The notes: generated by a model not told the origin, from the sequence alone. A stretch of 64,000 nt of DNA from Setoptus koraiensis (GCA_048013815.1 CM106586.1:11532001-11596000); one strand, 5' to 3'. Shown: positions 27,654 to 42,480, counted from the stretch's first letter. Numbers and translations: made by a program.

Positions 27654-28340
27654 GAGGCTTTTGTTCTTTCTGGAATCCTCTGTTAGACCTGGTTGGAGTC
27701 CCGGTTCATAACGGGTATTTGAAAATACCTGTTATTGGGCGTCATCAGGAATGAGGTTTACCTTGTAAAGACGAATCTGTTTCGACCCGTGAACCAACGG
27801 AGCGGATCAGGTTCGGTTCTTGTTCAGATTCTTCATCCAGGTAAGAATACTCGCTTCGGATTCCCGGCTACCGCTCTAGTCTAGACCATGGTTTAAATAA
27901 ATGTCGGTCGGTTTTCATTGCTAATAAAAACCATTTAATCCAGAAATTCTAGTCAGCCTAATTCAATAAAGCCAAGAAGAAATAAAATCATTCGAACCAA
28001 AAAGTAGAATTTTCTTCATGGTCTACAATGTGAACTCTGCATGGAAGCCAAAATCGATTCAACACAAGGAGATCCGATTACAACAGTACTGTTGATCGTT
28101 GTAATTCAACTCAACGGCCGACGATGACAAATCAAGCATGACCCGCGTGACTCGTCATTGCGGCACTGCCGGTATTCAGAATGAGAAATACAAAGAAAAA
28201 GTATAAGTAGCGAAAACAATATAAGATAACATGAAAGTAAACAGCATCTATTAATCAAGCTGATCATATGAGCAAACTTTTCCACCTTGTATTTTGTCGT
28301 GATTGGCTATTTTTATTGTCATCGATTCATATGGTCTGAC

Positions 28341-29651
28341 ATGGTTACTAAAGGGACAGTCAAACGGGCGCCCAGCTCAGCTGGGAGACAATCGTCTAGG
28401 GGAAAGACACAACAGCCTGGAAAAAATGTCGCTCGACTAATTGCCACAGTAAATAAGGCTCCAACGAAGACGCCTGCCATGAAGAGTAACCCAATCATAT
28501 CGACATTACATACAAGCAAATTAACGAGAGATGGCCGACGAACGCCGGAACAATACAGAAAGAACGTATTGGCTGTGTCATCGCCGTCACAAATATCATT
28601 GAAATCACTCACTGAACACTACAAAATACCTCATTCAAAATTTGAGACAGCAGATGATGTTTTCACTTATAGGGGCTACAAGAAATTAGCCAAAATAGAC
28701 GAAGGGGCGTTTGGAGTGGTGAGTAAGGCATTGAGAACGGGCGATAATCTGATTGTGGCTGTGAAAGAGATTGATCTAAGTAAGAAGAAAGTAAAAAGAA
28801 TTATAGAGATGCGTCGCGAATTGTTTGTGTTGCAAAAAGTGAATCACGCTAACGTGGTGAAATTAATTGAACATTTCGTAGTGGATCAGACACTAGTGAT
28901 TATAATGGAATTTTGTGCAGGCAGCAATTTAACCAGTTACTTGAAGGACAATCCTATCGATGAGCAAGAGACGAAGGGTTTATTCAGACAGATGGCATTG
29001 TCGATAAAGATTTTGCACAGAAGAGGCATTTCGCATAGGGATGTCAAATTGAACAATTTTCTACTAGACGCTTCAAAAAAACATTTGAAAGTGGGAGATT
29101 TTGGTTTATCGGTTGTGAGCTACAGAAAATCGGTCGGCATTCTGACGGCCAAGACCTACTGCGGCACTGAGCCCTACATGGCACCGGAGATAATGAAAAG
29201 AAACTCGCTCGGAGTCCGTTGTTACAATCCTATCTATACAGATATATGGTCGCTAGGCATTTGTCTGTATGCAATGCTCTCTAGAACGTTTCCGTTCAAG
29301 GTAAAGGCAAGCCAAGAAGAAATGATTAGGGCGCAGACCACGCGGAAATGGAGATTTCCCCGTAGCATCAGAAATAACTTGAGTGAAGAACTCAAGGATC
29401 TTGTATGGCACATGCTAGACCCAGAACCTGAGCGAAGGATATCCATCAATGGCGTTGTGTCGCATCCCTGGCTTATTGGTGGAAAATTCGTTGAATTTTC
29501 ATACGACGAGGAACCGCCAACTCATTTCGCCGATTCGCAACAGCAGACGTGGTCGTCGGTATCAGGCTCGCCAACATTTGGGTCTCCAAAATTACCGGCC
29601 TCAGCAAAAAAAATCCAATCATCTAAGCAAAAAAACACCGGTTTTGTGTAG
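28341..29651 (+). CDS. Testis-specific serine/threonine kinase (TSSK)-like, intronless
   Basis: EGAFGVV, VAVK, HRDVKLNN, DFG, TYCGTEPYMAPE, Y.P..TDIWSLG. First ATG at 28341. Confidence 0.85.
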   Translation: MVTKGTVKRAPSSAGRQSSRGKTQQPGKNVARLIATVNKAPTKTPAMKSNPIISTLHTSKLTRDGRRTPEQYRKNVLAVSSPSQISLKSLTEHYKIPHSKFETADDVFTYRGYKKLAKIDEGAFGVVSKALRTGDNLIVAVKEIDLSKKKVKRIIEMRRELFVLQKVNHANVVKLIEHFVVDQTLVIIMEFCAGSNLTSYLKDNPIDEQETKGLFRQMALSIKILHRRGISHRDVKLNNFLLDASKKHLKVGDFGLSVVSYRKSVGILTAKTYCGTEPYMAPEIMKRNSLGVRCYNPIYTDIWSLGICLYAMLSRTFPFKVKASQEEMIRAQTTRKWRFPRSIRNNLSEELKDLVWHMLDPEPERRISINGVVSHPWLIGGKFVEFSYDEEPPTHFADSQQQTWSSVSGSPTFGSPKLPASAKKIQSSKQKNTGFV

Positions 29652-30389: not shown

Positions 30390-30751
30390 TAGTCTAAATG
30401 AATGCATGTAGTGACTAATAAAAAATCACATAGCGTCGCTAAAAGTTGAGTTATTGAGTTTTCGGAGGCACAAGAAAGGATTTGTATTTATCAATTCTTT
30501 TTTACTGAGAGTAGAATGATTATAACGGAGAATTTTCGATCGATGGTCGGCTATTTGTTTTGGCTAGCGGGATGGGCTAGAATAATAACTTCGCTCTATC
30601 TTTCTCTGTATCTATATATATATCTCGCTCCCTCTCCCTCTATCCGACAAAACGTAATATGATACAGGATGTAAATGATGTTATGATGACAATAACATCA
30701 ACAGCATCCATAAACGTTAGCCAAAACATGAAGCTAAATCGCCATAGCATT

Positions 30752-33700
30752 TTATGTGAGTTCTCGTTCAAGCTCCTCAAGAGACTCGATCTGAGATGGA
30801 AACAAAATCTTTCTTTCTATGAGAGGTTGTCCGTCCCAACGAATAATAAAGGGGTTATTCGGATTATATGGATCCACCAATGTATTTGTCTGATATTTTA
30901 TAGAATCTATAACTATAGGATGCTGGGCTTGAAATGAAGGATTATTCAACAAAGTCTCTAATGGATCCATCTTTGCCCAAACTTTAAAACTGGCCATTAG
31001 AGCTGCACTTGGTTCATCGGTAAAACTAATCTCGTCCTCAGATACACTATTTAGTATATTGGCTAAAGTCAATGGTACACCACTGGGTAGTTCTCCATTG
31101 ATTAGATCATATCTCTGTTGATCAACAACACTATTAGCAGCGTCTGTATTGATAATATCGTTGTCTATATCCTCAGTTTCAGACGGTAAACTGGCCACTG
31201 TGTTATCCATTGAGTCAATGTACTGAACTTGTCCAGTTTTATTCAATTGATTAATCTCTAGACCAATACCGGAAATGTCCAATTGACTCTGCATATTTAA
31301 GACAGAATTGGTTTGTGTGGGGTCGCTGGGCTCTAAATCACTAGAAGCTTGACCATTGTCGCTGTCTTTCATTTCTGCCAATTGCATATCTTGATTGCTT
31401 GATGTCTGTCGCTTGTATCGTTTAGCAACGGGCGACGGTGCAACAAGTGAATTAACAGTACTGCCAGCCACATTGACTGGATTGTTGTTGTAATTGTTCA
31501 ATTGCTCTTGTAGCAATCGTTGATGTTTTTGTTGTTCCTGTAGGGCATCGTTCATTAGTTGATTGTAATATGTGGGATAAGTAATCATATTGAGCGGCAT
31601 ATAATGATACGGAGGAGTTTGCTGATAGTTTTCGGGCAGATAAATGGCAGGTTGCGGGGGATATTGGGCATAATGTGGATATTGTAGTTGCGTTAGTGCT
31701 TGAAATGGCGCCGATGGCTCACTATGAATCGGAGCTTGCTGCTGTGACGGATGATGGCTGATGTCGTCCATGCCCAACTCATTGTGATGAGCTACGCCCA
31801 ACCGGATGGCCAATTGATGCGTTTCCTCGCTGGGATGATCAAGGTCCTCAAGATCGGCATGTGTTTCGCCACGGGCCGCTGATCGAAACGTAGATGCCGG
31901 TTGACCAACTGGATTGTTATGATTAACTTGATTGAATATGTTTTGGTTGGCTCTTGATGACAGTCTGTCCATGATTGTTGCATCATACAATGAGCGGTCA
32001 TAATCATTAGCCAGTCCGTAGTCGTGACGATCTCGCTGATGCTGCTGCCTGAACTGACTGATTGAATCCTCGATGTAGCGCAACAATCGATCACAGTTGG
32101 AACTCTTAGATATCATTGGAGTGTCTTGTATTCGAAGCTCGTGGTCTAGTTGTTGTTGTTGTTGTCGCTCGTTGTAATTCGCCAGCAATAAATTGCTAAG
32201 TGGCATCCCACTGTCGTAATAGTCCAATGAACGCTTCTTTCTTCTTTTACCAACGGGGCTTGGAGCAACATTAAGCGGCGGTGCTACATTATTTGCTTGA
32301 TTTGTTGTTGCCTTCGTTGTGGTTGTAAGTGCCTGCATCAGTTTTGTTTCACCGTCATCATCTTCATATTCTTCGCTTGCTCCACTATCATCCTCGATTC
32401 CTTCTTCTATTTCTTCTTGTTCATTTAACGTTGTTATAAGAGGAATGTCTAATTTAAACTCGGCACTCTTCATCACACCACCCTTGCCATTTGCCACCGG
32501 CAAAGTAATTGACTGCTGTTGTGGCTTTGGGGCAATTGTCACAGTTGTCACCACTTGTGTTGTTGTTGCCGTTTGTACTGGAACAGTCGCAGATTTAATT
32601 GGTACAGTTTTCTCGATTGTCTTGATTGCCGATTGTTGACCAGCAGACGTCTCTGTGGCGGAAGCTTCTGACAAGGTGATCCTCTTCACCTGTTGAGAGT
32701 TAGAATTAGTACCTGTCGATGCAGAGCCTGCTGTCGCAAAAGCACTTCTACCATCCGCTGATACGCCACTGGTGACATATGGTTTACCCACTGTAGCGCT
32801 TGTCTGTTGTTGTGATTTAGCCAAGTTGTTCGTTTTGGGGCCTGTTTCGAGCTTCTTAGTTGTTGTAGTGGTTATTAATTCATTTCCTCGAACAACGCTA
32901 TTTATTGCGCTAGATTCAGAATTTTTTTGTTGTGCATGACCATCATTAGTGTAGTCAGCCATGCCTAGGTCGCTCAATGTTGTCAGTCCAGAATTGATAT
33001 CTGTCAGCGCCTGGTTAGAGGAATCCGTCAATAAGAGGGTCGTGGGAACATTTTCACTTAACTACAATCATGGCGTCCATTGTGATTGTTTGTTTTTCGG
33101 CATGCGTACATGACACACAAGCATGTTTTTAAATATATGCGTGTCAATTAGATTTTGATTAAAAAGTTTTGAATTAGTCAAACAATAATGAAAATTTCAT
33201 CATCGATGTAATGTATTAGCAGTGTTTGCCAATCATTATCATTGTGCATTAATGCGTAATACTATTACGTAATCTACTCAGTGTAAGTATATAGATATGT
33301 TCTATTGTACCTGCCTATGGTATTGCTTTCTTATTATCATTAATCTTTTTTGTTCTCATTGTCAAACAAACACTGTCAGAACTGTTTTCATTGTTGCTAT
33401 TGTTATCAATTATTATTCGTCATCGCTATTGTCTACTACCTCCTCGCTTTCTGAAATTACCTCAACTATTGGCATTGATGATTCTTCCACTATGAGAGTC
33501 GGACTATTATTATTACCATTATCTTGCGTCCCAAATTCAATTCCTTGATCGTAATAATCCAAATCCGTTGGTTGTTGTAGTTCTAAAAATTGTTGTTTAA
33601 CTTTTCTGTTATTGTGTCTGTTCCGATGTTTCCTCGCACCTTGTGTCGCTCTTCCTGTTTGCAAAGTCGCCGATTGTTGACCACGATTTTGTTGCTGGCG

Positions 33701-33894
33701 ACGATTGTTCATGGCAGCCGATCTAGATTTGTTTCTATTGCCTTTAGCTGGTGCCTTTAAATTGTTTGGGGCCAGTTGCGGAGGTTGAGGCTGTTGCTGT
33801 TGTTGTTGGTTAGCAACGACACCATTCTTGCGTTGTCTCATCTGTGTCGATATTGATTGTGTGTGTGTGTGTTCGTGCGTGTGCGTGTGCGTGT

Positions 33895-33955
<61 letters not shown>

Positions 33956-36900
33956 TGGTGTTGTCAATGCGTGTTGTTGGTCTATGAAATATAAGTAACG
34001 TGTGCAGCAGGTAGTAATTGAGATGTATTAGCAGTAGCAGTATATTTGGCTACTACTGCTGCACTTGCTAGAACAACAAGTGCAAAAGGTGATGCTTGGG
34101 TGCGTGGCAAAGAACGGACAGGGTACGGGAACGACAATAGTGGGAATTGTGGGTCGGCGGGGTGAATAGTGGGTACAGTCGGGATGAAATACCTTAGTTG
34201 CTTACCTGTAGACTCGACAAGGTAGTTTGTTGGTTTGCTGCGACACCAGTTGCTTGAGCGTTGCTTGTGGCACCATAATTAATTGAAATTGATGGCAGTA
34301 GCAGAGGTGGCGGCGTTGTGGCCAGTTGCTTGGTCTCAACTAGCGTCGTAGTGGTTTGTTGTGTCGCAATTGGAGCGACTGCAGCCGTTTGAAACGTTTG
34401 CGACCGAGCCAATTGATTGCCCATTTGATTAGAATTGGATGCCATTGATATTTGATTGGCTGCACCATTTGTCGTAGACGTGGTTGAGCTAGATGATGCT
34501 TGCTGTACACCTCCAGTCTGCTGACTTGATTGAACAGATGATACAGACGTCTGGCCAGAGGATAATTGACCAGAGGAAGCTGCAACGGAAACAACCGATG
34601 GCTGTTGTGCGCTCATTGCGGAGTTCGTAGTAGATGTGATTGATGCAGAGGACCTCTTCGCGCCAGATGATGCGCCTTTGGATGAGGCCACAATGGTTGC
34701 GAAATTTGATCCCTGTTGTTGTCCACTCTGAGCTGCCGTCGAGATTGTTGTTGATGATGCCTGTTGGACCCGGGAAGAGGGCTTACGCAATTGAGCTTGC
34801 GTGCTCAACTGCCGAAAACCCATCTGGGCCCCATTTGTTGTCTGAGTGGACACGGAACTAGATTGCTGCTGTTGATTGGTGCGCACATTATTGTTTTGTT
34901 GGTTCTGAACTATTGTCTGGACTGTATTAGTTTTTGGGCCTACAACTGAGACACCCGACTGACTATTGGTGGTCTGCAAATTTTGTGCCAGACCGTTCTG
35001 TTGTTTCATTTGATTGGAAGTGGAACTCACAGAGGAAGTGACTCCTTGTTTACCTGGATCGGACTGGATAGACATGAAACTTGAGGACAAATTATCTGAC
35101 GAACCTGCCGCTGGCATTGCCAGTGCTGTTGCTGCCGGTGCTGGTGCCACTACCGGTGCTGGCGCCACCGGTGCTGGTGCCGGCGCTAATATTGCAGGTG
35201 TTGGTGCCGCTACCGCTGCAGGTGCAGGTGCCGCTACCGCTGCTGGCGCTGGCGCCACCGGTGCTGGTGCCGGTGCTGGTATTGTAGGTACTGGTGCCGC
35301 TACCGCTGCAGGTGCCGGTGCCGGTGCCGCTACTGCTGCTGGCGCCGGTGCTGGTATTGCAGGCGCTGGTGCCGGTGCTGGTGCCGCTTCCGCTGCAGGT
35401 GCAGGTGCCGCTACCGCTGCTGGCGCTACCGCTGCTGGCGCCACCGGTGCTGGTGCCGGTGCTGGTATTGCCGGTGCTGGTGCCGCTACTGGTGCTGGCG
35501 CTGGCGCCGGTGCTGGTATTGCAGGCGCTGGTGCCGGTGCTGGTGCTGGTGCCGCTACCGGTGCTGGCGCCGGCGCTGATATTGCAGGTGCTGGTGCCGC
35601 TACCGCTACCGCTGCTGGCGCTGGCGCCACCGGTGCTGGTGCCGGTGCTGGTGCTGGTACTGTAGGTACTGGTGCCGCTACCGGTGCAGGTGCCGGTGCA
35701 GGTGCCGGTGCTGCCATGGATGTGGCAGTGGACGATTGTTGCGATACTAATTCGGAGGACTGGTCGCCCACATCAACGCCTGTTGATTGTTGCGAGACTG
35801 ACACTAAACTTGAATCGTTTTCCGCGTAGTCGTCGCTCGCAGCGTAACTTGAGCTTGATAGACTGGAAGACGATTGTTTTTCACCCACACCAGTTTGGCT
35901 CGTCGAAGAGGCTGCCGACAATTGATTAACATTTGAATTTTGTTTCATCATTGAATTGACGGAAGAAATCTGTGCCCGAGCTACTTTTTTGGGTTTTTGA
36001 TGCGACGCCGAGATGGATTGTTGTTGCATAACGGAAGTTCTGGCACCAATATTAGCAATATTACTAGTGGTGGTAGTGGCTCTCATAGATTGTGTTTTTT
36101 GTTGGATTGGATTCAACTGTAATATTATGGTTGGCATCAACGGATTCTGTGGTGACAATAGTTGTTGGCTAGAAGAGGACGTAAATCGAGCACCAGAAAC
36201 AGAGCCTTGCTGCTCTGTGGTGACACTAGATGCGCTCGATTGACCTGAGCCACTTGCCGATGTTGCTAGTGATGATGATTCCGCTCCTGAAGACGAGCCC
36301 GATACAACAGAGGACGACGTTGTTATAGCGGGTGGTGGCGGCGGAGCGGAAGTTTTTATTTGCGCACTACTAACTGAGGCTTGTGATCTGTTATTCACGT
36401 TTGATGTGGAAATAACAGCCGAACTAGCCTGTTGCTGTTGTTGCTGATTGTTGCTTACGGCAGCACTGGTAACCTGTTGATTTGTGTTGGCTCCGGCTTG
36501 TTGTTTACTAACAATGTTGCTAGTGGATGATTGAGAATTTGACGTTGCTTGCTGTTGGGCTCCGCTTAAAGAATTTATCTGAGTTTGAGTGGACGACGAT
36601 ACAGCTTGCTGTGGCTGCGGCTGTGGATTACTTGCCAGTGACGTTGAGCTCACTTGGGCGATCTGCTGCTGAGGTCCAGACGACGGCATTACAGGGGCCG
36701 GAGGGGCTTGCTGTTGGGACGCCACGGAGGCAGAGGAAGCTTGCTGTTGGGGACCTAATGAAGACGTTGTTGTCTGGCTGGTCACAGTGGATGTACTTTG
36801 CTGCACAGGCGGCTGAACATTCCAGCCACCGCTTGGCACAAAATCGCTCTTTTGTGGCACTAAGGTCCAACCACCGGACACGGGCTTACAAGGTGGTGGA

Positions 36901-39900
36901 CCAGAAGGTGGCTCACCTGATGTCGAAGGCTGCAGTGTAAAACCGGGCGGACAAGGGGGTACATTTTTCGTTTGAATGGGCGAAATCATTGTCTCGGGTG
37001 CTACAGTGGTAGTGCTAGGTGGCGCAATTGAATCGGGTGCTTTAATTATAAAGGCCTCTAATTTTTTTAAAATATCAGGCGACAGTTCAAGAATGCTCTG
37101 CAGTTGACTCAGTCCACCGTATAAATTAGTCAATTGCGGTTTCAATGCAGAATATGGACTTTGTGTGGTGGTTTTAGGTGCCTTTGTTGTGGTAGTAGTT
37201 GTTGTTGTTGTAGTGGTAGTAGATGTTGTTGTTGTAGAAGTCTTAGGTGCGTCTTCACAATCACATTTGTGACCAGGTGAACCGTGAGTAGAATTGTCCA
37301 ATTGGAAAGGCTTCAATGTTGTGCCAAGTTTGCGCAAATCATCTAAACCGCTCCTTGAGGCACCCGGGCCGGTCCCGTTCGGAGCCCGGTTGGCTGATGG
37401 TGCACCTGATGTCCCTTTGATCGGTCCAGTGGTGGGCGCATTTGTTGGTGCAATAGCTGGTGCCATTGTTGTCACGGCTGGACTCGGTGCTGGAGTCTGC
37501 ACAGGAACGGGTGCAATGGTTGTTAGTACGGGTGCAGGGGTCGGTGCAATAGTTGTTGGTACGGGTACAGGGGTCGGTGCAATAGTTGTTGGTACGGGTG
37601 CAGGGGCCGGTTTGACAGTTGTTAGTACTGGTGCAGGGGCCGGAGCAATAGTTGTCGGCACTGGTGCCGGGGCCGGTTTAACAGTTGTTGGTGCCGGGGC
37701 CGGTGCGACGGGAGGCGGATTCGCTGGTTTGCTCGCTGGTGGATTGGCGGGGCCCTTGGAGGGTTTGGAGGGGCCACCTCCAGATCCGGCCGCTGCGGCA
37801 CTGGCAGCCGAACTTGGTGGTCTGCTGGGAGGTCCATTCATCGATCCAGATCCACCCGCAGCACTCGCGGCTGCACTTGCGGACCCATTCGGACCGGCTG
37901 CAGCAGCGGCTGCACTTGCTGCACCTCCGGAACCGTCTACGGCTGTAGCGGCCGCCGCTGCACCAGCCGGTTGGCCTGCAGAGGCACTTGCTGCCGCTGA
38001 ACTGGAACCAGGTCTAATCGCACCAGGCGCGGAGGCTGCACCGGAAGCTGGGCCCGAGGCAGAGGCAGAAGCTGCACCGGAAGCTGGGCCCGAGGCAGAG
38101 GCAGAAGCTGCACCGGAAGCTGGGCCCGAGGCAGCGGCAGAGGCTGCACCGGAAGCCGGGCCCGAGGCAGCGGCAGAGGCTGCACCGGATTTAGGGGCTG
38201 CATCACTTGTTTGCATTACCATAGTTCCCCCGGTGCCGCTGGACATCATTGCAACAGTGCCTTGACCTTTCCTGGTCTCTTGCTCTTTGGCAACAAGTAT
38301 GCTGGCCAGAAGATTGGCCTCTTTGCTACGCCCGGCGAGCAGATTGAACAGTGGACTATCTGGTTTTATAGAATCCTTCAATATATTCCCAGGGCTCGCA
38401 ACTTTCGCTGGTGCCTCTGTGGTGTCGCTGTCGTTGTCACTTGCATCGTCCTCTGTTTCTGCTGGAGCGGGTGTCTCTTCTTCTTGAGTATTTTTCGTCT
38501 CCATTAACTGTTTCAGCATCTGAGTGAGCTGTGCCATCGTATCCAGCGATGATGAATTTGATGACGGTGCAATTGCTACTGCGCTAGGCTGTTTAGAAGT
38601 GCCAGATGCTGGTGCCGCTGGTGGTGCACCTGGAGCTCCAGTTGCTGTACCAGCGGCACCAGAGCTAGAACTAGATGGTGCCGACGGGGTTGCTTGTGCT
38701 ACCGCTGGTGCTCCGGGTGCCGGCGCGATGGCAATGGCGCCCGGAGTAGCCGCAACGGAGGAATGTGATGGTGTTCCAGGGGAACCAGACGGAGAAGCAA
38801 CGGCTACTGCACCCGGTGTGGCCGAAACTGCCGTATGGGGAGGAGGTGCTGCTGGTGCTGGTGCTGGTGCTGGTGCTGGTGCTGGTGCTGGTGCTGGTGC
38901 TGGTGCTGGGGCTGCTACAGCTGCTGCAGGAGGGGCTGGTGGTGGTGCGGTTGCTGGTGGTGCAGGAGGCGCTGGTGCTGGCGGAGCCGCAGGTGCGGCC
39001 GCTGGTGCGGCCGCTGGGGCTGGTGCAGGAGGCGCTGGTGCTGGTGCGGCAGCTGGTGCGGCCGCTGGGGCTGGTGCAGGAGGCGCTGGCGCTGGTGCGG
39101 CCGCTGCTGGCGGAGCCGCAGGTGCCTCAGGGGCCGCTGGTGCTGGTGCGGCTGCTGGGGCTGCTGCAGGAGGCGCTGGTGCTGGTGCAGGAGGCGCTGG
39201 TGCTGGTGCGGCCGCTGCTGGCGGAGCCGCAGGTGCCTTAGGGGCCGTTGGTGCAGGAGGTGCTGGTGCGGCCGCTGCTGGCGGTGCAGGAGGCGCTGGT
39301 GCTGGAGGCGCTGGCGCTGGTGCGGCCGCTGCTGGCGGAGCCGCAGGTGCCTTAGGGGCCGTTGGTGCAGGAAGTGCTGGTGCGGCCGCTGCTGGCGGTG
39401 CAGGAGGCGCTGGTGCTGGAGGCGCTGGCGCTGGTGCGGCCGCTGCTGGCGGAGCCGCAGGTGCCTTAGGGGCCGTTGGTGCAGGAGGTGCTGGTGCGGC
39501 CGCTGGGGCTGGTGCAGGAGGCGCTGGTGCTGGTGCTGGTGCAGGAGGCGCTGGTGCTGGTGCGGCCGCTGCTGGCGGTGCAGGAGGCGCTGGTGCTGGA
39601 GGTGCTGGCGCTGGCGCTGGTGCGGCCGCTGCTGGCGGAGCCGCAGGTGCCTTAGGGGCCGTTGGTGCAGGAGGTGCTGGTGCGGCCGCTGCTGGCGGAG
39701 CCGCAGGTGCCTTAGGGGCCGCTGGTGCTGGTGCTGGTGCGGCCGCTGGTGCGGCCGCTGGGGCTGGTGCAGGAGGCGCTGGTGCTGGTGCGGCCGCTGC
39801 TGGCGGAGCCGCAGGTGCCTTAGGGGCCGCTGGTGCAGGAGGCGCTGGTGCTGGAGGCGCCGGTGCTGGTGCTGGTGCGGCTGGTGGCGGACCTGCTGCT

Positions 39901-42312
39901 GGTGCGGCTGCTGGCGGTGCAGGAGTCGCTGGTGCTGCCGAAGTTGGTGCCGCCGACGCCGGTGCCGCCGAAGTTGGTGCTGCCGACGCTGGTGCCGCCG
40001 AAGTTGTTGCTGCCGACGCTGGTGCCGCCGAAGTTGGTGCTGGCGAAGCTGCAGGTGCCTTAGTGGTTGCTGGCGGTGAAGAGGGGGCTGCTCCTGCAGC
40101 TGGTGCCGCCGACGTTGGTGCTGCTGATGGAAGCATTGATGCCCGTGGTGCTGCCGATAGAGGCGTAGGTGGTGCTGATGTTGTGGTGGGAGCCTCCGTT
40201 GGGGCTTGTGTCGTTTCTTGTGGCTTACTGGTTGAATCGGTTGATGGGACTGGTGTTGAGCCAGTTTCATCCGAGGAACTTGAACTTGGGTCATTAGGTG
40301 GTTGGGGTGCTGCTGCAAGTGGCATGAGTACCCCTAAGAGAGTTTTCAGTGCTGGCGGAAGTCCGCCATTGGCTGGTGCCGGACCGGTATCGGGAGTTCC
40401 GCTTCTTCCGCCTCCAGGTGGCGGAGCTGCTCCACTCTCACCTCCCAGTCCTCCCAGGAATGTGGGTATAGATGATATGCCTTGCTCCACCGCTTTGCCG
40501 AGAGGTGGTGCTATTTGACCAATGGCTTGGCCTATAGCGGGTCCTGCTTGCTCTAGTATCTTCTCGGCGGGGCTAATGAATGGTTGAAGCAATTTCATAA
40601 TAGATTGTGCACCGTCGCCTATCATATTGACAATGCCGCCCATTGAGTCTCCAGCGCCTCCTTTGGCGCCAGAATCTCCGCTGCCTTGCTTTGCGCCAGA
40701 GTCTCCACCACCGCTTCCTCCGCCGCCGCCCGGGTCACCCGTTCCGCCAAGTAGACTTTGGAGGGGCCCAAGTAAGCTGGAAAGGTCCTACAGAAGTAGC
40801 ATTCGGAAGTAGCGAATAATAGAATATATGGTGGTCATAGAGTTTAGTTAGCTGAACATTGCTCAAACATGTCGCAGACGGATATTCAATTCAACAGTTT
40901 AGACTATTGTGTGACACTCACTTGTGCGTTGCTGCCACCTCCACCGGAATTACCCGCGTCACCGGCGCTAAGTAAGCTTTGTATCGGTTTTATTAAACCA
41001 GCTAGGTCCTGTGATCAAAAATAAATTCAGATACGTCGTTGAGAGGAGTTATCAAATGGTTTTTGGAATTTCTCACGACATGCTCGAATCATCAAATGAT
41101 ATAAGTTATGCTATAACCACACTTACGCCTCCTCCCTCGCCACCGAGCAAACTCTGAATGGGGCCTATCAGGCTAGAGAGATCCTGTTTCGAACAATTGA
41201 GACAACCCAAATAGAGAAAAAAACATGACGAATTTAGCATTATAGTTATGGTAGTTTGATCACTGACCACATGCACAAACAACAGGCTCAATCAATCTCG
41301 AAAATCAATCTCAATGCGATACTAACGCCTCCTCCAGCTCCCCCGATTAGACCTTGTAAAGGGCCTATGACGCTTGATAGACCCTGATAAATTGTATGGG
41401 TAAATCGAATTAATGGACATGTCAGTTACGTTTAAATAGTTTTATAATTGGCAGAGAGCTCTTTTTAATTTACTTACTGGAATCATACTGCCGGCAGATG
41501 CAGCTGCTGGTCCTAAAAGATCCCCTAGACCATCTCTGGAACCGGCTACTGGCAAGCTCTGATTTAACAAATGCCGTCAGATATGGTCAATGAGATCAAT
41601 CAAATAAATTCTAATTTGATGCTAGTTATTGATCGAAGTAGTTCAATTATGTAACTCTGCTGAATTTTGATATTACTCACGCTATCTTTTTTTTCGCTAC
41701 TGTCATCGCCGCTTAGGCCACTTCTACTGCCGGCAATATTGTCTTGAGTTAGCTCATGAGATATTCTGTGGGTCTGTCTCCATTAATTACATGTGATAAC
41801 AATTTATCATAAACAGAAGAGTTGGTTATGAAAATACACTCAAAAATGGGATTTTTTACAATAATGTCATCATTTGAAGTTATTTGCACTCACTCCACTT
41901 GAACCAGTTAAAGTATTGTCTAGTAGTCCACCAATTAGTTGAGACAAAACGGGCACGCCCGGATTATTATTTTCTAGATGATGTGTATGGTGATTATTTG
42001 TAAGTTATTTTTTTACATGTTTTTCATGACAGTCGGGTGATCGATTTTTTATGGCGATTATGCAACAAGTGTAGAGAATAGAGGACGATTTTGATGTCAT
42101 TAATTTGTTAAATCACGTGGTTGTGTCTGGCTGTGGTCAATGATAACTCTTATAGCCATAATGGGAATTGGTTTGTAACTCTCTTAATTGTTGTATGATA
42201 AATTACCGTAGGAATCGACACCAAAATAGTTAACAAAGGATTGTAAGCAAGTTATAATGAAGAACAAGTCAAATAATGCTATTGGCAAGCATGAATACCT
42301 CCTTCTTCTCAT
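30752..42312 (-). CDS. Giant secreted low-complexity protein (~3,150 aa; mucin/glue/silk-like); exons 42312-42207, 41973-41894, 41773-41681, 41558-41478, 41383-41327, 41183-41127, 41008-40922, 40787-34206, 33061-30752
   Basis: Exon 1 encodes a signal peptide ([34 protein letters not shown]). Every junction is GT-AG and in phase. The body has PA-rich, SA-rich, T-rich and SQ-rich blocks. The 34206-to-33061 junction is the least certain. Confidence 0.75.
33858..33952. repeat. (TG)n microsatellite, intronic
   Basis: TG/TGCG run that produces the spurious poly-HT start of ORF 33413-33967. Confidence 0.9.
35100..35715 (-). repeat. Coding Pro-Ala repeat block 2 (APAPAP/AVAAP)
   Basis: Degenerate tandem gcc/ggt/gct repeats within the giant exon. 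Confidence 0.85.
38035..38188 (-). repeat. 36-bp coding tandem repeat, about 4.3 copies ([12 protein letters not shown])
   Basis: Units start at 38035, 38071, 38107, 38143 and 38179. Confidence 0.9.
38842..40060 (-). repeat. Coding Pro-Ala repeat block 1 ([30 protein letters not shown])
   Basis: About 1.2 kb of higher-order tandem repeats in the giant exon. Confidence 0.88.
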
Positions 42313-42480
42313 CAATGATGTCTGTCTGAATCTCATCATCTATAGTAAACCTATTATAGGTATCGAGCAAGACACCACCAACTAACACAGTATGTTTTAA
42401 TAAATCTAATTATGATATTGATTCCCTCTCTATTTGTTTAATAATATATAACACAAGCACGAATAAATAATTATTTTTGC

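Follow-up and report, generated by a model that had tools for sequence, protein, structure and literature searches.

The pyriform spidroin PySp1, which has a cement role, consists of 16 near-identical 213-residue units with helical N- and C-terminal spidroin domains (PMC6627382). Among mites, Fibroin-1 and Fibroin-2 of Tetranychus are secreted repetitive proteins with Val/Asn/Ser-rich or RQAQA repeats, for which an adhesive role has been proposed (PMC12534534). The 'silk' and attachment material of eriophyoid mites is secreted by anal glands, which are treated as inherited across the eriophyoids, well developed in web-makers and reduced in others, and no protein has been named for this material (PMC13027148). 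Published eriophyoid assemblies, of two chromosomes each, are those of Setoptus koraiensis, 47 Mb and without RNA data (PMC11920263), and of an unidentified species, 34.5 Mb (PMC11879100). Here we analysed 64,000 nucleotides of S. koraiensis DNA (GCA_048013815.1 CM106586.1:11532001-11596000), referred to below as the window, which carries on its minus strand, from 42312 to 30752, a gene predicted to encode a giant secreted protein that ends in a conserved module of about 85 residues. A first-pass annotation had reconstructed a secreted protein of about 3,150 residues at this locus; the secreted giant has stood, but not its length.

Joined in frame on the minus strand, ten exons give 3,253 codons and a stop codon, with no internal stop. 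Exon borders were read from the DNA by eye and then located by script. Exon 1 (42207..42312) holds the start codon and a signal-like sequence, MRRRR followed by a hydrophobic core, and ends in phase 1 at the donor gtaatt; exon 2 (41894..41973, 80 nt) encodes the first Leu/Gly-rich mini-repeat and restores phase 0, with a 151-nt AG-free zone before its acceptor. Exon 3 (41681..41752) is an acidic, Ser-rich mini-exon of 72 nt, and exons 4 (41478..41558), 5 (41327..41383), 6 (41127..41183) and 7 (40922..41008) are phase-0 mini-exons. The repetitive body of 2,194 codons is exon 8 (34206..40787), followed by 127 basic, Gln/Asn-rich codons in exon 9 (33461..33841) and by the non-repetitive C-terminal part, 752 codons and the stop, in exon 10 (30752..33010). 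All nine introns have GT..AG borders and contain stops in all three frames, and every join is in frame, those after exon 2 all in phase 0. In eight of the nine introns a stretch of 44-151 nt lacks AG and the first AG beyond it is the acceptor, the exception being that of exon 3; the introns around exons 4-7 measure 94-143 nt, with AG-free zones of 61-77 nt. The open frame around exon 8 extends over 2,197 codons and all its repeat periods (Tandem Repeats Finder) are multiples of three, a combination that is far beyond chance. The exon ends at the donor CAG/gtaagc, shortly before an in-frame stop at 34194. Mechanically called open reading frames (ORFs) on the minus strand are of 2,149 codons (34194-40643), 759 codons (30752-33031) and 184 codons (33413-33967), with additional small pieces. 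The first-pass annotation had held that such a track splits one protein, and the continuous frame, the splice signals and the single ORF of a relative all bear this out.

This relative, L002, is an 18-kb genomic contig of a distant, intron-poor organism with an uninterrupted frame of 1,209 codons. Its first part runs in the order found in the window: a signal peptide, Leu/Gly-rich PL..L.G motifs, Ala/Ser/Pro blocks and a basic site, RRRRR/S. After this site follow a spacer with another PL..L.G motif, a Ser/Thr block, a DHPTE motif, TPLE and the terminal module. The overall composition is also close (A 21, S 19, P 11 and T 9% in L002; A 20, P 15, S 12 and T 8% in the window, where Q makes up 7, G 6, V 4.6 and N 4.4%). 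Because a single unbroken frame of L002 holds the parts in this order, the pieces in the window are best read as one gene, and together with the frame and the splice signals this supports a single secreted giant protein rather than unrelated pieces, as far as can be judged from DNA. Between two sequencing runs of this relative, all four substitutions inside the ORF are at codon position 3 and the sole indel is of 6 nt, which indicates that the low-complexity part of L002 is coding and constrained. The window and L002 are the two sequences for which a full-length N-terminus is known, and the best 12-residue Kyte-Doolittle mean is 2.50 in exon 1 compared with 2.68 at the N-terminus of L002. Entry of the precursor into the secretory pathway is strongly supported.

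Contigs from sequencing runs were aligned to 30700-33855, which covers exons 9 and 10 with intron 9 and ends short of a (CA)n repeat in intron 8. Two of the runs, X1 and X2, are DNA: their contigs continue through intron 9, and over this region only three single-base differences were found. All three lie in exon 10, one synonymous and two not, too few to interpret. Two runs with a third organism label, X4 and X5, gave thin contigs, 100% identical, that are confined to exons 9 and 10 and leave intron 9 uncovered; X5 has one on exon 9. The absence of the 450-nt intron from all eight of these contigs is not significant, gaps of 860-1,170 nt occurring elsewhere, and they may represent either mite DNA at low coverage within a different sample or a weak RNA signal. 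A search of the genome (48.76 Mb in two contigs) for paralogues of exon 10 and of the N-terminal 110 residues of exon 8 found none, and the gene is single-copy.

It might be argued that the model fuses more than one gene, or that the locus makes no protein and consists of decaying or mis-assembled repeats. Transcript joints are absent, the exon 3 acceptor is ambiguous, no poly(A) signal was seen and the chain could end at 33413 by way of exon 9. A mere decaying array would hardly keep 3,253 codons free of stops over ten exons with canonical splice signals throughout, nor would two independent DNA data sets be expected to agree over 30700-33855 with so few differences; exon 10 has neither a start nor a signal sequence of its own, L002 holds the same order in one ORF, and the module is terminal in all seven relatives. 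We therefore regard a fused or protein-less locus as very unlikely.

The weakest point of the model is the acceptor of exon 3, where the AG-free zone is only 11 nt. Acceptors at 41752 and 41773 are both in frame, the latter adding 7 residues; an AG cluster lies before the exon at 41753-41780, and its first AG would yield a stop. At the 5' end, the in-frame ATGs at 42339 and 42336 are alternatives to 42312, and the N-terminus could gain nine residues; a TATAAT-like box is located about 47 nt upstream of 42312 (42350-42365). Towards the 3' end, skipping of exon 9 would preserve the frame, while read-through beyond its donor leads to the stop at 33413. Intron 8 contains the (CA)n microsatellite of about 95 bp (33858-33952), which gives rise to the spurious His/Thr-repeat ORF at 33413-33967 on the minus strand. 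Long Gly/Ala-rich ORFs on the plus strand (38524-40518, 37294-38265 and 35014-35829) are mirror images of the repeats and not genes. Exons 5 and 6 have the same length, exactly 57 nt, and encode near-identical repeats, which resembles an exon duplication.

A phmmer search of the C-terminal ORF against 1.84 billion representative proteins gave 5 matches, all through the last 85 or so residues and all to unannotated ORFs from run assemblies, and one further relative of the module came from a plant metagenome; among the same representatives no annotated arthropod or mite protein matched the C-terminal exon. The relatives of the module total seven unannotated sequences, apparently from plant mites, so that the arthropod-wide mucin or cuticle protein that the first-pass annotation had set against its own reading is not what was found. 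Word-index protein searches, limited by their length window, returned nothing for the 759-residue C-terminal ORF or for residues 940-1209 of L002, and with the module profile, under the same limit, only P0004. The module directly precedes the stop codon in all seven relatives, and in L004, L005, L006, L007 and P0004 it follows long low-complexity frames; in the L004 relative a stretch exceeding 1,000 residues is rich in Ser, Ala, Thr and Gly. Twelve positions of the module alignment are invariant (P, P, DS, Y, T, P, P, I, RK and P), and identity to the window is 32-40% in this alignment; compared directly, the modules of the window and L002 are 41% identical. In the same two genomes a TTC21-like housekeeping protein is 37% and a mitochondrial carrier 61% identical. 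The identity of the module is thus about that of the TTC21-like protein, and across this deep divergence it has been conserved to the same degree as ordinary proteins. Upstream of it, the motif D.DHP[ST]E.TH..A occurs in the window, L002, L004, L005 and P0004, and the motif TPLEP.A.QA is represented by TPLE(P/Q) in L002, L004, L005, L006 and L007 and by a weaker DLEPS in the window. These alignments strongly support a small unannotated family, which would be defined by the C-terminal module of about 85 residues together with the two short upstream motifs; the window protein has the module just before its stop, the upstream motifs and a long low-complexity N-terminal part.

In the window the module is encoded at 30776..31018 on the minus strand, as are all protein features given below, and its conserved pattern is EPS..L..F.VW...PL..L..NP....PIV(V/I)DS..YQT..V....P..IRWD..P.IERK.L(F/Y)P. 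An AF2 model from a six-sequence alignment (pLDDT 79.5, pTM 0.61) predicts an alpha/beta structure of four short helices, a four-stranded sheet and a tail helix. Foldseek of this model against the PDB gave no match (best E 0.67), nor did an Atlas fold search (TM at most 0.38) or a wide VIA search (best Z 2.7), and these blanks do not prove a new fold. A sequence search against solved structures reached a best E of 0.75, which is noise; an ESM Atlas feature search showed low recognition, with matches to unnamed clusters only; and Pfam scans of exons 8-10 in pieces and of four homologues, at E thresholds from 0.1 to 1, gave no family. The remainder of exon 10 comprises a Gln/His/Tyr/Pro-rich region, a His-rich stretch with a conserved 13-residue motif (31808..31846) and a region of 10% Tyr. 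Two furin-type sites are present: RKKR (32231..32242) within GKRRKKR/SLDYYD, the counterpart of RRRRR/S in L002, and RYKR (31409..31420). Two acidic-Tyr motifs of the LDYYD type occur, one in exon 9, where the first is found, and one in exon 10.

The N-terminal part is built of mini-repeats. Exons 4-7 each encode one repeat of the type DL(S/A)(S/G)LI(G/K)P(I/L)QSLL...GGG, and one 15-residue mini-repeat type begins each of exons 5-8. The first-pass annotation had called these mini-repeats amphipathic; they are present, but their own helical amphipathicity is only moderate (muH 0.27-0.40, or 0.18-0.40 over exons 4-7), and it is three segments of exon 8 after the last mini-repeat that are strongly amphipathic (muH 0.42-0.51, reached in 0 of 2000 shuffles). 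The last mini-repeat, a Gly-rich stretch and these three segments make up residues 1-150 of exon 8 (40338..40787). An Ala/Pro/Ser/Thr lead-in and a first Pro-Ala block follow at 38718..40190, with repeat periods of 114 and 228 nt. The block itself has about 440 residues, of which 90-97% are Ala or Pro, and a Lys recurs every 38 residues or so within a 12-residue motif of two variants. An acidic, amphipathic spacer separates it from a silk-like Ser/Ala/Gly block of about 140 residues (37788..38207), composed of repeats of a ten-residue sequence followed by (A/S)A that show a 36-nt period at 38035-38189 (4.3 copies, 97% matches by Tandem Repeats Finder).

This silk-like block, the great length of the protein, its conserved non-repetitive C-terminus, the composition of the L004 relative and the anal-gland web spinning of some eriophyoids (PMC13027148) would be expected of a true thread-spun silk fibroin whose module acts like a spidroin C-terminal domain. 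The block accounts for only about 140 of 3,253 residues, however, and the longest poly-Ala run is 6. With almost every Ala run broken by Pro, fibre cores of the beta-crystalline type are improbable. A homogenised tandem core is absent, Tandem Repeats Finder giving only short-period arrays with 61-97% matches within blocks that are unlike one another, and the composition differs from that of Tetranychus Fibroin-1 and -2 (PMC12534534). In agreement with the earlier remark that no spidroin terminal domain is recognisable, the Pfam scans of exons 8-10 matched neither Spidroin_N nor the spidroin C-terminal domain (Spidroin_MaSp), and exons 1-7 are too short to hold the N-terminal one. A fibroin of this kind is highly improbable.

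Downstream in exon 8 is a mucin-like Pro/Ala/Val/Thr block (37480..37787) with a 33-nt period at 37510-37692, each repeat containing a ten-residue sequence, and then an HKCDCED motif with Thr runs of up to T12 (37184..37271). A mucin that lubricates or protects the gut, the rectal sac or the salivary tract, forming a hydrated brush and neither glue nor structure, would likewise be secreted, very long and poor in Cys (5 in about 3,070 residues of exons 8-10), and it would have such a Thr run and blocks of 52-53% Pro+Thr+Ser. Only three 100-residue windows reach 50% Pro+Thr+Ser, at these same values, and the greater part of the chain consists of Ala/Pro or Ser/Gln stretches; VWD, C8, TIL, CK, SEA and CBM14 domains are absent by Pfam, and the phmmer search showed no conservation across arthropods. 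A mucin of this sort seems rather improbable. The remaining blocks of exon 8 are a C..C segment with two SGGW motifs (36798..36953), which contains two of the four Cys of the exon, a first Ser/Gln-rich block (35688..36797), a second Pro-Ala(-Val) block of 200 residues with AAP(A/V) motifs (35088..35687), and a second, Ser/Gln/Thr/Asn-rich block up to the donor (34206..35087). All the features listed by the first-pass annotation (the signal start, the PAPAP blocks, the repeats, poly-Thr with its CDC motif, the C..C/SGGW pair, the SQ-rich blocks and the polybasic C-terminus) were thus located, and all on the minus strand.

We tentatively favour, as the best single account though one we hold loosely, a secreted, furin-processed, O-glycosylated precursor of a cement or matrix that is nearer to glue than to fibre. 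The signal peptide would be removed and the Thr/Ser/Pro-rich blocks then O-glycosylated, as their motifs suggest. Pro-Ala runs are stiff, extended linkers, and the Pro-Ala blocks would serve as long spacers of this kind, unable to form beta-crystallites. The spaced Lys and the Gln-rich blocks may provide sites for transglutaminase Gln-Lys cross-links, and the Tyr/His-rich region for dityrosine or metal binding. Cutting of the two furin-type sites, RKKR and RYKR, would free a His/Tyr/Gln/Pro piece of about 270 residues and a module-bearing piece of about 218 residues; the term polyprotein, used in the first-pass annotation, would hold only in the sense that the C-terminal part would be divided into three by the two cuts. 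The functions named in that annotation (adhesive, silk, egg glue or salivary sheath) are neither supported nor refuted here. A role in directing assembly or secretion is probable for the C-terminal module. The resulting material would be a hydrated, cross-linkable glycoprotein of cement or glue type, deposited outside the animal and not a crystalline fibre, possibly as a glue for eggs or spermatophores or as part of the attachment or anal-gland secretion.

Several points weigh against this account. None of the runs containing this sequence is recorded as RNA, the contigs aligned to exons 9 and 10 show no splice joints, and a canonical poly(A) signal was not found in the 400 nt 3' of the stop. 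There are alternatives for both the start codon and the acceptor of exon 3, and the signal peptide was assigned by eye and by hydropathy. Glycosylation, cleavage and cross-linking are read from motifs, and of the homologues long enough to include that region, only one also has the furin sites. A similar composition would suit cuticle, eggshell or gut-mucus proteins equally well.

The last of these points leads to a structural protein of a body-bound matrix. It could belong to the cuticle or apical extracellular matrix, or else to the eggshell or vitelline layer; epidermal or follicle cells would produce it, and its cross-linking would take place there. The AAP(A/V) motif, of which the protein has 38, is common in insect cuticular proteins, and insect eggshell proteins are typically Ala/Pro/Tyr-rich or Gln/Met/Pro-rich precursors that are cleaved by proteases. 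A C-terminal exon region with 10% Tyr and a single-copy gene conserved across a deep divergence would fit such a matrix. Pfam finds no chitin-binding, Tweedle, ZP or other matrix domain, and there are no annotated arthropod relatives, although cuticle and eggshell families can be lineage-specific. While a matrix role is somewhat doubtful taken by itself, we consider a cuticle or eggshell matrix nearly as likely as the favoured reading, and a gut or salivary mucin less so; no evidence here cleanly separates the matrix protein from a cement or glue. That the gene is single-copy and its exon 10 region unique makes the question of tissue testable.

Among the major pests of crops are the gall and rust mites, whose attachment, web, egg and spermatophore materials are without a known protein. 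If the protein is a secreted cement or glue precursor, it is a candidate for the first component to be identified at the molecular level in the anal-gland 'silk' or attachment glue of eriophyoids, which is used in sticking to plants, ballooning and web nests, with the module as an independently evolved assembly or storage domain. This more specific proposal is a speculative one and on present evidence unlikely; were it true, the module would fill the role of the terminal domains in spider silk. The block design, in which stiff Pro-Ala rods with spaced Lys, mucin brushes and Gln- and Tyr/His-rich cross-linking regions would be combined, is of interest for adhesive biomaterials.

The surroundings of the gene and of its L002 relative show no synteny. 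In the window, an intron-free protein kinase gene on the plus strand (28287-29651; Pkinase, E 1.9e-62) is convergent with the giant gene and lies about 1.1 kb past its stop. Positions 1-6109 of L002 carry, within 6 kb, a polypeptide GalNAc-transferase, a one-frame TTC21-like protein, Ebp2 and a mitochondrial carrier, a gene-dense and intron-poor arrangement. The TTC21-like gene is likewise a single open frame in the genome of the window (C1:22889024-22890571). An automatic gene caller chose the wrong strand over the repeats of L002 (7468-8703 and 9190-9891).

Giant secreted repeat proteins are a familiar kind, and this one stands outside any known family, with a terminal module that has no Pfam entry. 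With arthropod cuticular proteins it shares secretion, low Cys and the AAP(A/V) motifs, which are not family-defining, but a Rebers-Riddiford, CBM14 or Tweedle domain is not found by Pfam in any piece or in the four homologues, and it is at least 10 times longer than is typical. Elastomeric matrices of the tropoelastin or resilin type, which are cross-linked, offer a parallel in their long Ala/Pro-rich disordered stretches, regular Lys in an Ala/Pro setting and Tyr-rich cross-linking regions; there is no sequence relation to them, however, Gly-Val-Pro type hydrophobic repeats are absent and cross-linking in the mite protein is inferred. The Drosophila Sgs proteins are insect glue proteins, and like them and the gel-forming mucins the predicted protein has a signal peptide, Thr/Pro/Ser-rich tandem repeats (the 33-nt repeats, T12 and three windows at 52-53% Pro+Thr+Ser, which would qualify as a mucin-type domain) and a very long disordered chain that would be extracellular and probably O-glycosylated. 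It differs from mucins in having no VWD, C8, TIL or cystine-knot domains by Pfam and no Cys-rich ends, and its mucin-like blocks are a minority of the chain. Tetranychus Fibroin-1 and -2, compared by their published description, differ in composition, the protein described here being Ala/Pro/Ser/Thr/Gln-rich with 4.6% Val and 4.4% Asn. The likeness to PySp1 is that both are secreted proteins of 3-4 thousand residues with a signal peptide, PXPXP stretches in which Pro alternates mainly with Ala, Gln-rich motifs and a non-repetitive C-terminus (PMC6627382). The pyriform-silk character claimed by the first-pass annotation therefore holds for composition and fails for unit structure and end domains, since the blocks here differ from each other and an alpha/beta structure is predicted for the C-terminal module. 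The likeness to the pyriform spidroin is one of convergent composition and not of homology, and the mite protein adds a further case of convergence towards a pyriform-spidroin-like composition.

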